From Orbicella franksi (taxonomy: Eukaryota): 64,000 bases of DNA. The DNA is taken from assembly GCA_964199315.1 (NCBI GenBank), contig OZ116702.1:14694001-14758000 (forward strand), written 5' to 3'. The stretch's first letter is position 1. The number at the start of each line of letters is the position of its first letter. This document shows, piece after piece, positions 31,797 through 53,161 of the stretch. The notes below the pieces were generated by a model. That model searched no databases. It was not told where the DNA came from and saw only the letters and a list, made by a program, of their open reading frames with translations. A program made the translations under genes and the position numbers.

Positions 31797-34179
31797 ACAT
31801 TTTATTCGTATAGGAATTTTATGGGAACACAAGTATTAGCTATATCTATATCTATATCTACATTTTAATAATTGATTGACTCGTTTTGTTCAGAAATGTT
31901 TCCATGATAAAATCTACTTGTAATTTTATCTAGGAAGAAAGTTTATACTTCTTTTAGATTCCAATTTCTTTTTAATCAAAGAAGTTGATTAATTAATTGT
32001 AGTAGTGTTGTTTTCCTAAACGAGAGTAGTTTTGAAACAAAGTTGAGTGATTGTGTATTTAATATATATCTTCAATAAATTTGATGTGATCTTTGTAATT
32101 CTGTAATTGCCATACATGTTAAAGTCAAAGCGTGGGCAAATTACTAACTTTTCTGTACCAGAAGCAGGATTATGTCTTTCATCTTTCAAAACTCACAGCA
32201 CTAAATGTGCCCGGGCAGGTTGAAAATCTTTCTTTCCCATGAAAATGAAAGAGTGAGCAGGGTTTTGAGTAAAAGTCAAAGCGCCTGTGCATTATTATTC
32301 AAAATCTTTTAGTTTTTCCCAGAAAATCAATAAGGTGAGTGAAGTCCTATTGTTTCTTTTAAGTGAGATGTAGGAAAAAGCTTCGTTCTTCTTTTGGCAA
32401 AGAGTGGTCTCAAATTACTGTTCAAATCAATACTAAGTGTAGGGGAAAGAGAACACTGATTCAAAGGCTTAAGAAACATACTTTTACTTGAAACCAAAAA
32501 TAGATGATGAATTTGATCATTTTTAAAAGGAGGCGAACCTGGCACAACATTTTGGCAGAAGTTTAACAATGGACAATTGCAAACAAATACGTTGTATTTG
32601 AAGGTTTCAGAAGTAAAATAACGCAGAAGGTAGTTAGACATCAGACTCAAAAACATTTTATTTTGGCCAATATTTCCTCCTTTTAAGATGGCAGAATTTA
32701 TTAAAAACTGTTGTAACTAGATTTCATAATTCCTGTTGCTGTAGAGTAAGTTCCTTGGTCACATCAGAATTATTTGCTGTGATGCGAAAACACTACTTAA
32801 GTTGTAGATGTATTTTAAAATGAAAATTTGTATTATTACAGGCTCTAAGGGGTGTTGAGCATTATTTTTTTTAAAAAAAAATTATGTATGTTGCTGTGAT
32901 GCAAACAATTACTTTGTATTTGAATATTTCAGAAGTAAGACTCTGGGAAAAGTAGCTGGACATCAGATTCGTTAATACTTTATTTTGAACATTATTTCCC
33001 ACTTTCAATGCAACAGAATTTATTAATTACAAACTCCTGTAACTAGATTTTATAGTTCCCATCACTTTAGATAAGTTGCTTGGTCGCATCAGAATTATTT
33101 CCTGTTATGTAAAAACATGAGTTAATTTGTAAATGTATTTAAAAGTATAAGATGACTTTAAAATAACATAGAAAATGATTTTAAAAACGGTCCTTGCTTT
33201 ATTACAGGCTGTATGGGGTATTCAGCAGTATTTGCCAGGAATTTTTTGCTCCCGGAATCTTACCTCTGGAAGAGAACCCATAGCTCCTCAAAAACTTGCC
33301 GGAGAAATTTGGAATGACCTCGAATCCCAGAAGGAACAAAACAACTTTTCGGCAACGCCTAGTCAGTTATAGCTACATGTACTTATAATAGAGTGAAAGT
33401 AATAAGCCCTTTGTTTTCTCGTCTTGAGTCGCACACTAAGCACTCGACAAAGCTCTCGCCACTTCGGTGTTCACAGTAGTTTCTAGCAAGTTTCTAGTTT
33501 CGAAAGATATGGCATGACAAAAAGCAGAAGCATATCACCTATGCTTCTGGTAAAAGCGAATGGGGTGATATTTACATGTTGGAAGCATGAGAAATTGACA
33601 AGGCGTTCAATGTCTCATCGAGCAATCCTGGGCTCGAAAAAAATGGTTTGTGTTGAAGAAACAAGCTTTGTATGAATGAATGTTCAAGCTCAAATGAAAA
33701 GCACGAATGAAAAGCACTGGCATCCTCAAAATTACAACTTCAGCTAAACAATGCTGGATTGAATTTTGTATAACAGTCGTCATAACTAGAAGTCAATTTT
33801 GTGGAAACTCTTAAAGCGCCCCGCATTGCACACCCCAAAAAATTGTAAGTTCGCTCCGTACACAAAATTAATAATATGCTATTCAAAATGAATTCAAACA
33901 TCTGAAACACCGAAATGATAAACCGTCTGTGGTCTTAACAAACAAAGTGAATTAATAGGAAATTTCTGTTACAAAATATCAAAATCTCCGAGCTCACTCT
34001 CATGGAATTGTAAACAACTTGTGACTGACTCTGAGCTCCCCTGGTAAAAAGCGACAAAATCGCTCACTGAAATAAAATTATTCTATCTGGAAGTTGACAC
34101 GATCATTGTGTTAATACGTGCAAAATCGCACGCAAAAGATCTTAACACGTGGCTTTGTCGGATCATGTGTACTATAGGT

Positions 34180-34615
34180 GGACTCGGTCGATATATCAAC
34201 CAATATATTGGTCGATATATCGGTCGACTGTCGGTCGACCATTGACCAACTATCAACCGATTATCGGTCGACAGTTGACCGACATTCGACAGATAGTAGC
34301 CCGATGCATCGGCCGTTATGTAGCGATCGTCTGCCGGTGAAGTATCGGTCTAGTATCGGTCAAGTATCGATCAAGTATCGGCCAAGTATCGGCCAAGCAT
34401 CGGTCAAGTATCGGTCAAGTATCGGTTGACTATCTGCCGACTGTCGGTCGACTATCGACCGACTATCGACCAACTATCGGACGATAGTTGGCTGACATTC
34501 GACCGATGGTCGACCGATGCATCGGCCGATATGTAGCGATCGCCTGCCGGTGAAGTATCAGTCAAGTATCGGTCAGGTATCGGTCGACTATCGGTCGACT
34601 ATCGGTCCAGTATCG
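34180..34615. repeat. Left subterminal array of TATCGGTCGA / TATCGGTCAAG motifs
   Basis: Many 10-11-bp motif copies in both orientations. Confidence 0.9.
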
Positions 34616-49833: not shown

Positions 49834-52794
49834 TTAAAAATAATAATAATTTAACTAATTCATCAATTATCTTCATTTACCCTATTAAGCTCCACGTTCT
49901 ATTTTATACTTTAGCAATGTGCTATTAACAGATTAAAATTTTGGCTAGTAATTGCAGTTATGAATTAGAGTAAAAAGGCCTTATTTAATATGTGCCAAGA
50001 AATGTTTTAGATCACTAAGTTTTGGAAGACTTTTGATTTGTTGTTACTTTACTTTATGTTTAGTTTTTAGGCTTTAAATGTAGATCATCGTAATAACAGA
50101 ATGCTATGTAATAAGTTTGTTGCACTTTTTTTGAAAACGAAAAAGAGTAACCAAAAATTACTGCTTTTGGAACGAAATTCGTAGCTATTAGTAAACTGTT
50201 GATAATTATTATTTACACATCCAATTTTATATTGTACAAAACTATAACAAATGATGAAATAAATTTAATGATTGAAAGATGTGAAGCAATGTGAAGCAAT
50301 TATTATCTTAATCACCATTAACATCATTATTTTTAATGGACGGAAATTAGAAAATTGAATGGGAGAGGGGGAGGAGAGGGCTGAGGTGAATTTGCGAGCT
50401 GCAAGCAATTTTTTGTTTTGCGTCATTTTTCCTACAGAGGAATGTTTTCGGGAAAACCCTGACACCTCCTTAGAAGAAAAAACAAACAATTTTACTGTGC
50501 TAATCTCTTGGCGCGAGAGTAGTTGCTTCTCCATCCACTCAAATTAAATAGCTCAGTTTTACCACTCGAAATATCTTGCCTTTGGAAAGAAAGCCAATTA
50601 AAATTTCGTTAAAATACATGCTTTCAAAAACCATTTCCATTTGAATTTTGTAATATAATTTTTTTTTCGGATGACATTGCTTTGCTCAATAATTCATTTC
50701 TTTTTCCACGTTTCCATGCTCTTGGTGCGATTCTCGTAGCCGTGTTTATTGTGACGCACAAATCGTGCAGCACCTATAATTCGTGCTTGTAAAACCCTCT
50801 CCTCCGCAGAGGCTTATTTGTGCCACTAAGAGGCTGGGAGAGAGAAAACAAAGCGCAGTCGCCTTTCTTTAAAGGGGGGACTGGTGGGAGGTTCTGCAGA
50901 ATAAAGAAGGGAGAGGTTTAAACAAGAGATATATAGGTTGAATCTACTTGAAAAAGATATATAGAAAATAAATCAATTAACAATATATTGAAAAAGATAT
51001 GTAGGTTGAATAAACTTGAAAAACTGGGTAGGGTAAACGACCGAGCACTTAGGTATGACATGTATTTATAACAAAGACCCTTCCGTAAGAAAGACTGCTC
51101 AATTTGATTGGTTTACTTAACACATTAAACGGGTCGTCTCACCCAAGATATGTTAATTACGCTAGACAGATGTTTTCAAAAGAAGACAAGAAGACACTCA
51201 CCATTATATCTAATTGAAGAAAAGTTGTCGTACAAGAGTGTAAGACCGTACGCTACAATACCGAAAGGTTGTGTGGGTAACGGTTGTTTGCCCTTGCTTG
51301 ATCGAAGCTCACAGTTTTAGCCAGAAGGAAGGAGAATCCATGAACATGCGTGCTCATGCTATCTCCCTCTATTGCGTAAAGCAGCGAGAACTTCGACCAA
51401 GCAGTGCTAGGGAAAATTCAATTGGCTAACTTGACAAAACTTTGTTTTTATTCAACCAAATTTAGCAATAGTTTTAGTGTGTAGGTGCAAAGTAGTTGAT
51501 GATGTCATCGGGACACGCCCAATATGTAACGTGACCTAGAACAAAATACTGAGTTTTATGCAAGAAACTTACAGTTTTATCCTTAGTTTGTAGTATCATG
51601 TCAACTCTTACGTTACTCTTAAGAATTATAAGCATGCGTTTTCCGTTAGCACGAAATATTGAAAATAAGGACAAAAATTGTTCCCCGCTGACCACCTTCT
51701 TGAATGCAATTTCTACACTTTTTTTAGATTTTAATAAAACGCTTGCCTACGTTTCAAGAAAAATGTATTTTTTTTTCGATTTAGGCTTTTTTCTTCCCGA
51801 GTAAAGTAGGAATTTTCGTCAGCACCTGAAGTAAAACTGAATGTTGACTGATTAGTTGAAAGCATCGTAATTGGCATTGCTGCAGTAAGTTGGCTTCCTC
51901 ATTGCTCACGTACGCTTTGATACATTTTTGGATGCGGCAAACTTTAATTACATCTTGCTTGTTTTCAAACAGCTTTAACAACGTTTACTGTAAGTCACTA
52001 TAAACTGCGTAAGATATTATCTTGCCTTTGTGTCTTACAGCAGTTTTCTTATGTCCTTTGTTCAATTTAAGTATGCTTTAATTTTTGCCCATGGCTTTCA
52101 TAGACTTCTGCAGTGAGCTGAGGGGGAAACCGCTCAAAACACGACCCGGTATAGAGTGATTTTCGCTTGACTTTGAAAAACAGTTTCCAGTTGTTAGCAT
52201 GTTTTCTAATACATCGCCAAAAGATGCATAACCTCAAAGTTCTTAAAGTTTTGTTTCCTTGCTGAATTTAAAATTAGATGATTACCTGATATGTTGAAAA
52301 GTTGTTTCATTCACCAATAGTTTTTGAGTTCAGAACAAACTGATTTCTCGCTGAAGGCGCCTTGTAGCACACCTAATATGGAAATGGTATGGTATTGTTG
52401 GAAAGACCAATCAAAATTGCTGTAAACTGGTGACGCTTACAAGAGAATATGGGAAGAACAGCTGAAAGGAAGCTAATGATTGGGATATTTCATTTGGATA
52501 TTTTCGATGGATTAGTCCGCAATTTTTGCATCTGGTATGCCGCACCAAATTTATACATTCCCTCTTTCTGGTTTTCTCTCCAGTCTGGCATTTCTCTGGC
52601 CAGTTTTTATCGCTCGAAGTTGCAAGAAATTAGAAAATCACTTGTATTAGTTCGCTGAAATGCGTTGCGTGTTCGCCGTCGTATCTGTTCGATAAACGAA
52701 ACAAAATGCAGGATTTTTTTTTCGTTTGTTATTTGCGTTCTGTTTGCTCTTTATCGACAGACGGGGATACTTAATTTAAATAATAATGACACGG

Positions 52795-53161
52795 CAGAAA
52801 GTATCGGTCAAGTGTCGGTCATGTATCGGTCAAGTGTCAGTCAAGTGTCGGTTAAGTATCGGTGAAGTGTCGGTCAATTGTCGGTCAAATATCGGTGAAG
52901 TATCGGTCAAGTATCGGTCGAGTATCGATGGACTAAGACTATATCGGTCGACATATTTATCGGTCGACAGTCGACCGATATATCGGTCGACTATCGACCG
53001 ATATATTGGTCGACTGTCGGCCAACTATTGGTCGACTATCGACCGATATATCAGTTGACTGTCGGCCAACTATTGGTCGACTATCGACCGATATATCGGT
53101 CGACTATCGGTCGACTGTTGACCGATATATCGACCGAGTCCACCTATAGTACACAAGATCC
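52795..53161. repeat. Right subterminal array and TIR of the Merlin
   Basis: GTATCGGTCAA 11-mers followed by TATCGGTCGA / TCGACCGATA copies. Confidence 0.9.

Follow-up and report, generated by a model that had tools for sequence, protein, structure and literature searches.

Transposons of the Merlin/IS1595 type (Feschotte 2004; PMC8101967) encode a DDE_Tnp_IS1595 transposase with an N-terminal zinc ribbon, end in terminal inverted repeats (TIRs) that start with GG, and generate target duplications of 8-9 bp. Those described carry the transposase only; beyond it, the 2021 survey of Merlin reported one chance overlapping open reading frame (PMC8101967), and our literature search, which did not extend to Repbase, found no description of a second Merlin gene. 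PIF/Harbinger transposons, in contrast, carry both a transposase and a Myb/SANT-like DNA-binding protein, and have been domesticated as HARBI1/NAIF1 and MSANTD2 (PMC9392472). Here we analyzed a 64,000-nucleotide stretch of the Orbicella franksi genome (contig OZ116702.1, positions 14,694,001 to 14,758,000; hereafter the window), in which an insertion at 34160-53161 carries a Merlin transposase gene and, head-to-head with it, a second gene, called here the accessory gene, whose last exon encodes a domain of the CCDC106 type. The insertion resembles the described Merlins in its transposase, GG-initiated TIRs and target duplication; unlike them, it has a second conserved gene, introns and a size of 15 kb in the family to which the window copy belongs (family A), and phased subterminal repeat arrays. 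It resembles PIF/Harbinger in being a cut-and-paste element with, as we infer, a separate DNA-binding accessory protein, and PIF/Harbinger also gives a precedent for the domestication of an accessory gene in vertebrates; it differs in its unrelated transposase superfamily, in a CCDC106/LEAFY-like seven-helix domain rather than a Myb/SANT fold, and from the 3-bp duplication of PIF/Harbinger. We consider it likely that the insertion is an inactive copy of a two-gene Merlin lineage, whose accessory protein would bind the element ends. A lineage with such a predicted DNA-binding accessory protein appears to be new for Merlin, and the window copy is a dead member of it. A preliminary description of the window had proposed a Merlin lineage of two genes, the second coding for a dedicated accessory protein with a CCDC106-type C-terminus, and this proposal was supported by the sister copies, the profile and structure matches, and the linkage presented below.

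The ends of the insertion were clear. A perfect 8-bp target-site duplication, gctttgtc, is present at 34152-34159 on the left and 53162-53169 on the right (no strand assigned). Just inside it lie the left TIR (34160-34197, plus strand), which starts with GG and reads GGATCATGTGTACTATAGGTGGACTCGGTCGATATATC, and the right TIR (53124-53161, minus strand), which is the reverse complement of the left end with one mismatch; an inverted-repeat search gave 39 nt at 97% complementarity. The TIR of 38 nt, beginning GGATCATG... and thus GG-initiated, is of the kind expected for Merlin, and the ends and duplication bound one insertion of 19,002 bp (34160-53161), just as it had been delimited in the preliminary description. 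A whole-genome search using the left end and the last exon as queries located three sister copies in the same genome, at C3:15813986-15833531 (c3), at C5:14984043 onward (about 15.2 kb), and at C8:155045-170542 (c8). Between the TIRs these copies match the window copy at 96-98% identity, their flanks are unrelated, and each of the four copies has its own perfect 8-bp duplication (gctttgtc, aaaaacgt, caagaatc, and gaaaattc). Because the identity stops at the TIRs and each copy has a duplication of its own, the four are products of transposition rather than segmental duplicates, showing that family A has moved as a complete element on four or more occasions. The accessory gene occupies the same internal position in all four copies; whether the CCDC106-like gene is also present elsewhere in this TIR family was thus answered by all three sister copies having it. 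This shared position, and the single TIR pair around both genes in the compact relatives described below, speak against separate TIRs or a separate duplication for the gene region, for which no dedicated search was made. A-like loci also occur at C10:6.89 Mb and at C3:23.91 Mb. The closest protein homologues of the window are those of stony corals (Desmophyllum, Stylophora, Acropora, Montipora, Oculina, and Porites).

The transposase gene of family A lies on the minus strand. Its exon 1 (44826-44993), with the ATG at 44993, encodes the zinc-ribbon N-terminus, and exon 2 (44453 to about 44746) continues up to the first catalytic Asp (IQIDESKF), ending ...IQIDESKFNRKSK at a GTAGGT donor; both exons align with Merlin (DDE_Tnp_IS1595) transposases. 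The third exon, with the codons for the second D and for the E, has been lost from the window copy, is present in c3, and is partly present in c8; that of c3 contains one TGA and matched PF12762 at 83.4 bits (cut-off 27), and the transposases of the compact relatives described below matched at 60-83 bits, as expected for the Merlin superfamily. Exon 1 of the window copy has in addition a 19-bp deletion relative to metatranscriptome contigs, in which 19 letters insert behind 44837; at this site the other copies read extra ...HLHNVDGYIW. The spliced but truncated minus-strand Merlin transposase starting at ATG 44993 that had been reported for the window was therefore found as described, with a zinc ribbon and first D that could be read and a DDE exon that was gone. 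Between the two genes is a divergent intergenic region of about 2 kb (44994-46964), within which 45539-45712 and 46132-46310 form a direct duplication, spaced by about 598 bp and 92-95% identical, in all four copies.

The accessory gene of family A lies on the plus strand and would encode a protein of roughly 270-300 residues. Exon 1 (46965-47195; ATG at 46965, donor GTAAGA) encodes a CCHC zinc knuckle, a CxxCxDxxxCxC motif that recurs in the intronless relatives, and a basic stretch; exon 2 (47460-47684; acceptor ...TTTACAG) encodes a coiled coil; exon 3 (about 48700-48841), whose 5' boundary is uncertain and whose 3' junction is in phase with exon 4, encodes an acidic-then-basic linker; and the last exon, exon 4 (49483-49833; acceptor CAG, stop codon TAA at 49831), encodes the CCDC106-type C-terminal helix-turn-helix domain with its GVPRNTLR motif. 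All four recognizable accessory exons are open in the copies c5b and c8.

When the last exon alone was compared with the CCDC106 profile (PF15794), as the preliminary description had suggested, it matched at 30.3 bits, a borderline score relative to the gathering cut-off of 30.2, and covered profile positions 124-217 of 220; the fold, as shown below, matched too. The exons upstream of the last accessory exon gave no PF15794 match. Among 26 aligned family domains, 23 matched PF15794, the best with an E value of 5.2e-11. With a profile built from eight coral domains, 274 proteins were retrieved at E<=0.001 from a set of 1.84 billion representatives. The C-termini of the retrieved sea-anemone-type, amphioxus, and abalone proteins reached or came near the PF15794 cut-off, for example 34.8 bits for amphioxus P0223 and 42.5 bits for sea-anemone-type P0115. 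Three proteins (P0002, P0115, and P0116) aligned with PF15794 over positions of about 7-219, nearly the whole profile, which the window exon does not cover. As its coverage is confined to positions 124-217, the window protein is homologous to CCDC106 in the C-terminal domain and is not a full-length member or orthologue.

Structure prediction gave the same result and added a second match. The AlphaFold model of the window exon (49483-49830) was all helical, with a predicted local distance difference test score (pLDDT) of 84.6, and a Foldseek search of the AlphaFold Swiss-Prot models returned CCDC106 from human (Q9BWC9), cow (Q1LZ89), and mouse (Q3ULM0) as the top three; the superposition, in which both sides are predicted models, covered 100 residues (residues about 179-274 of CCDC106) with a template modeling (TM) score of 0.72, a root-mean-square deviation (rmsd) of 2.5 Å, and a probability of 1.00. 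Exhaustive structure alignment against one representative per PDB cluster gave a single strong match, the DNA-bound LEAFY DNA-binding domain (4bhk_A), with Z 9.8 and rmsd 2.9 Å over 113 of 116 residues; the next match had Z 4.6. It took this exhaustive alignment to bring out the LEAFY match: Foldseek had returned no PDB entry at E<=0.001, LEAFY leading its list at E 0.4, and when the domain profile was compared with PDB sequences, all matches were at chance level. There were also weak HTH_psq and CENP-B_N matches on the GVPRNTLR motif, of which the conserved form is G(V/I)PR(S/N)T(L/V)RD. From the Pfam match, the CCDC106 and LEAFY folds, and the HTH_psq and CENP-B_N matches, we read the C-terminal domain as a predicted seven-helix helix-turn-helix DNA-binding module homologous to the C-terminus of CCDC106. 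The coral proteins share with vertebrate CCDC106 the homologous C-terminal 100 residues or so and a coiled coil ahead of them; they differ in having an N-terminal CCHC knuckle and Cys motif, in being multi-copy, and in residing inside transposons, and they are not its orthologues. With the LEAFY/FLORICAULA DNA-binding domain (4bhk, 2vy1) they share the arrangement of seven helices with a helix-turn-helix, at an identity of 12-16% that does not demonstrate a relation at the sequence level, and such similarity of fold proves neither common descent nor a shared mode of DNA recognition. LEAFY binds pseudo-palindromic sites as a dimer; human CCDC106 has been described as a p53-interacting protein, reported to promote the degradation of p53, and not as a DNA binder. 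Our literature search returned no paper tying CCDC106 to transposons or to LEAFY and, judged by title and abstract, nothing relevant on CCDC106 and DNA binding.

The pair of genes recurs in other, diverged families. In family B, found in the same genome, the element is compact and intronless, with an accessory gene that encodes about 260-280 residues and is located head-to-head with, and about 300 bp from, a single-exon Merlin transposase gene (own-genome compact loci L010, L013, L014, L015, L016, and L019); the accessory protein has the same architecture as that of family A, namely knuckle, Cys motif, basic stretch, coiled coil, and CCDC106 domain. Besides this genome, Desmophyllum pertusum and two ENA assemblies also have such compact, intronless two-gene elements of 3.4-3.5 kb, and in two bounded full-length examples both genes lie inside one TIR pair: L085, a family-C element of about 3.36 kb on a Tara contig, has TIRs beginning GGTAAAAG..., an 8-bp duplication (CATTTGCA), a 293-aa transposase and a 269-aa accessory protein, and L081, an element of about 3.5 kb in an ENA assembly, has TIRs beginning GGGAATGG... 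and a 9-bp duplication (GTTGGTTAG). At the Desmophyllum pertusum locus (L080) the element could not be bounded, and an open transposase frame lies beside the accessory gene. The family-B deletion derivative L012 (TIR GGTAAAGG..., 8-bp duplication AACATGTA) has kept the accessory gene and lost the transposase. The TIRs of these relatives start GGTAAA... or GGGAATGG..., and the duplications, 8 bp at the four family-A copies, L085, and L012 and 9 bp at L081, are of the length that characterizes Merlin. Retention of the second gene inside the TIRs was therefore found across diverged families, in A, B, and C as well as in Desmophyllum pertusum and the ENA contigs. The accessory domains of the three families are 35-43% identical to one another, and the transposases are 28-39% identical between A and B or C and about 50-58% identical between B and C. 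The linkage of CCDC106-like loci to Merlin transposases, which the preliminary description had put forward for checking, held as well: 10 of the 17 CCDC106-type loci in this genome are within 10 kb of Merlin transposase sequence, relative to a chance expectation of about 0.003 per locus (68 PF12762 matches in 497 Mb), three more are family-B deletion derivatives, and the linkage recurs in Desmophyllum pertusum and the two ENA assemblies. No CCDC106 domain was found in the fetched loci of transposases that are about 40% identical (L091 and L092) or in the own-genome single-gene Merlins.

Copies of families A and B lie close together in two regions, with two A copies and one B derivative within 330 kb at C5:14.73-15.06 Mb and one A copy and two B copies within 75 kb at C3:15.81-15.89 Mb; this clustering suggests local hopping or a preferred region. 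One family-B copy, L011 (C3:15847726), has two tRNA genes in or beside its 3' part, at 2068-2140 (minus strand, 55.6 bits) and 2316-2388 (minus strand, 60.1 bits), as detected with Rfam.

Both ends of the window copy carry arrays of short repeats just inside the TIRs. The left subterminal array (34198-34650) consists of TCGGTCGAC repeats in a phase of about 11 bp, and the right array (52780-53123) consists of repeats of the same TCGGTCGAC type; they are candidate binding sites for the accessory protein. Within the 64-kb window all 13 matches to TCGGYCGAC fall at 34220-34599 or 52944-53115, with 0.07 expected. In families A, B, and C the more general motif TCGGYCRAC, with its palindromic core GTCGGCCGAC, clusters in the few hundred bases just inside the ends, often in an 11-bp phase. 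A further group of loci (L027-L034 and L041; for example at C14:9286738, C12:14546017, C3:22110265, and C4:8320153) matches bases 25-79 of the left end only and is rich in TCGGYCRAC; these may be non-autonomous relatives or miniature inverted-repeat transposable elements using the same putative binding sites.

The compact relatives share a further feature, located at the 3' ends of their genes. In families B and C the sequence AAACGGCTCCTTTAGGAGCCACCA is present within tens of bases downstream of the stop codon, on the correct strand. The Rfam model for the histone 3' stem-loop (RF00032, Histone3) gave 12 matches with scores of 34.6-40.6 bits (gathering score 34) at eight loci (L010, L012, L013, L017, L019, L080, L081, and L085), and at L010, L012, L080, and L081 it matched behind both genes. 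The stem-loops lie at 29-74 (minus strand) and 1857-1901 (plus strand) in L010, 962-1007 (minus) and 1851-1896 (plus) in L012, 4681-4726 (minus) and 9219-9263 (plus) in L080, and 4728-4773 (minus) and 6882-6926 (plus) in L081; in L085 there is one at 8821-8862 (plus), and that behind the transposase (6809-6846) was seen only as an inverted repeat. The stem shows one compensatory change from C:G to T:A, and a conserved AAAAGTCAATGA box follows the stem-loop at the position expected for a histone downstream element. The true histone genes of this genome, in an array at C10:600-771 kb, scored 35.1-35.4 bits, and the transposon copies score equally well or higher. Family A, to which the window copy belongs, gave no RF00032 match at E<=1. 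These ends, which in the compact relatives read ...GGAGCCACCA, thus resemble those of replication-dependent histone mRNAs in having an RF00032 stem-loop and a putative downstream element; unlike in those, the predicted signal is on transposon genes rather than histone genes. Our search of the literature found no report of a histone stem-loop or histone-type 3' end on a transposase gene.

Homologues of the accessory domain also occur without a linked transposase. The amphioxus and abalone proteins have the domain joined to B-box-like zinc fingers, and the sea-anemone CCDC106-like genes are without the zinc knuckle; that of Exaiptasia diaphana sits in an intron of a RabGAP gene. No Merlin transposase, TIRs, or histone stem-loop was found within 10 kb of the abalone locus, the two amphioxus loci, or the Exaiptasia locus. 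The sea-anemone genes, which have no transposase within 10 kb, keep one GTCGGCCGAC palindrome about 125 bp upstream of the start codon (L093:9871-9880 and L087:509-518), with GTCGG repeats around it, and this palindrome might be left over from a Merlin end or might serve in autoregulation. In an unrooted tree of the domain, which contained no vertebrate sequences, the bilaterian proteins fell on one side and the cnidarian sequences, clades A, B, and C and the sea-anemone genes, on the other; there, the sea-anemone genes branched within the transposon-borne clades (support 83/75).

Because the accessory gene and the TCGGYCRAC arrays occur together, we propose a mechanism in which the accessory protein would oligomerize through its coiled coil, its helix-turn-helix domain would bind the phased subterminal repeats, and the bound complex would mark the element ends or bridge and pair them, and recruit or import the transposase, in parallel to the Myb-like protein of PIF/Harbinger. 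We lean slightly toward this mechanism as a whole. It could instead be supposed that the accessory protein, although a gene product of the element, acts away from the ends, as a regulator or in interaction with the host: it might, for example, repress the bidirectional promoter, control copy number, or influence a host checkpoint, for instance the p53 pathway. Human CCDC106 is, after all, known as an interactor of p53 and not as a DNA binder, and the sea-anemone GTCGGCCGAC palindrome, given its distance of about 125 bp from the start codon, would suit autoregulation; nevertheless, the fold is that of a DNA-binding domain, and the motif arrays are located at both ends of every accessory-bearing family and not in the intergenic promoter, so that we judge such a role unlikely. 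That the gene has no role in the element at all, being a host CCDC106-like gene captured by transduplication and carried as passive cargo, seems to us quite improbable. Passive cargo would not stay open across such divergence, and the pairing has been kept in three families despite accessory identities of 35-43% and transposase identities of 28-39% between A and B or C; the two genes are always head-to-head, in several coral genera; the same putative 3' processing signal follows both genes in families B and C; and a deletion derivative has retained the accessory gene. The homologues without a linked transposase in sea anemone, amphioxus, and abalone would nevertheless fit capture, as would the position of the family-A transposase, which is not a clear sister of B and C and leaves room for independent acquisitions. 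Exceedingly improbable is chance, in which a CCDC106-like gene of a separate element or host locus would merely happen to sit within the Merlin insertion: the 19-kb element does contain unrelated nested material (a Gypsy element, and fragments common to all copies), but all four copies, with their independent duplications, hold the gene at the same position, compact elements of 3.4-3.5 kb hold just the two genes, and linkage was observed for 10 of 17 loci where about 0.003 per locus was expected. Chance juxtaposition was effectively refuted by the sister copies and the compact relatives.

Several observations weigh against the two-gene lineage with an end-binding accessory protein or limit how far it can be taken. 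Both the DNA binding of the accessory protein and its interaction with the transposase are inferred only. TCGGYCRAC was not found in any of the 48 fetched loci that have no member of the accessory gene family, among them about 25 loci of single-gene Merlins and two contigs of 11 kb, and as the single-gene loci examined were only 3.3-11 kb long, its absence there is not exhaustive. In the transposase tree B and C formed a clade with support of 100/100, and family A, a long, partial, and decayed branch, was not placed; with the family-A transposase outside the B and C clade, the two genes may have come together, or changed partners, on more than one occasion. No intact transposase is present in any of the four copies of the 15-kb family, and for that reason the autonomy of family A is unproven. 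The preliminary description had also proposed a plus-strand multi-exon gene beginning at ATG 46965, in which minor points needed correction; the proposed junction between exons 2 and 3 is out of phase, so the middle of the accessory gene model is tentative. Two raw-read runs from polyadenylated RNA had no reads on 44300-49950 and hence gave no test of splicing, and two sets of metatranscriptome contigs ran through exons and introns with no splice joints, maybe as a result of DNA carry-over, and hence speak neither for nor against the exon model.

The window copy itself has been enlarged by one later insertion and reduced by deletions. A Gypsy-type long terminal repeat (LTR) retrotransposon of 4,469 bp with RVT_1, RNase H, rve, and zf-CCHC domains is nested at 35847-40315 (plus strand); its LTRs, of 134 nt and bounded by TG..CA, are 99% identical (two positions differ), it is flanked by the 5-bp duplication ctatt, and its frames, a 1021-aa gag-pol and a 365-aa integrase, are open; the element is young. 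It is missing from all three sister copies and thus is specific to the window copy and lies outside the Merlin element proper. The preliminary description had listed a long interspersed nuclear element, an element with a 9-bp duplication, and the Gypsy element as clearly nested; this was correct for the Gypsy element, whereas most of the other material is common to all four copies, leaving the Gypsy alone as window-specific. Because most of the internal material other than the Gypsy is common to all copies, the ancestral element measured about 15 kb, instead of the 11-12 kb calculated earlier by removing all the presumed nested elements.

By comparison with the sister copies, about 1.65 kb has been lost from the window copy at about 42788, the catalytic transposase exon included, and a further 0.9 kb or so, corresponding to the spacer between two tandem versions of the last accessory exon, is missing. 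The three sister copies have a second version of this exon about 1.4 kb downstream of the first and 86-88% identical to it (L043, C3:15829868-15830212; L046, C5:14995654-14995992; L048, C8:158342-158683; the corresponding position in the window is about 49886), and the A-like locus L008 likewise has two tandem versions. The second version may serve as an alternative 3' exon. In the window copy, a deletion between the repeats removed the spacer together with one version. Its accessory reading frame is interrupted by a TAG at 48801, found only in this copy, where the other three have Glu. The TAA at 48652, in contrast, occurs in every one of the four copies and precedes the likely acceptor, and for both reasons is probably intronic. 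The earlier verdict that this copy is dead thus holds for its truncated transposase and the TAG at 48801 but not for the stop at 48652. With the catalytic exon lost, the 19-bp deletion, the TAG, the loss of the duplicated last exon, and the nested Gypsy, the window copy is inactive and cannot move alone.

Taken more broadly, the results allow a tentative proposal, doubtful as a whole, that the CCDC106 C-terminal domain is an ancient DNA-binding module of LEAFY-like fold, carried by transposons and originally devoted to reading Merlin subterminal repeats, that vertebrate CCDC106, the amphioxus and abalone B-box proteins, and the sea-anemone genes are independent domestications of a Merlin accessory gene, and that histone-type, non-polyadenylated 3' ends time both genes of the compact coral Merlins to S phase. 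Merlin has been treated as a single-gene superfamily; with a conserved accessory gene it would join the few cut-and-paste transposons in which DNA recognition is separated from catalysis, and the intact 3.4-kb elements would provide a natural system in which to study how such a split works. The histone-type 3' ends, if used, would couple a transposon to DNA replication in an unusual way, through the expression of its genes. The results also provide the orphan CCDC106 domain with a first concrete functional hypothesis, sequence-specific DNA binding with a LEAFY-like fold, and they suggest that a Merlin accessory gene is a plausible evolutionary source of the domain.

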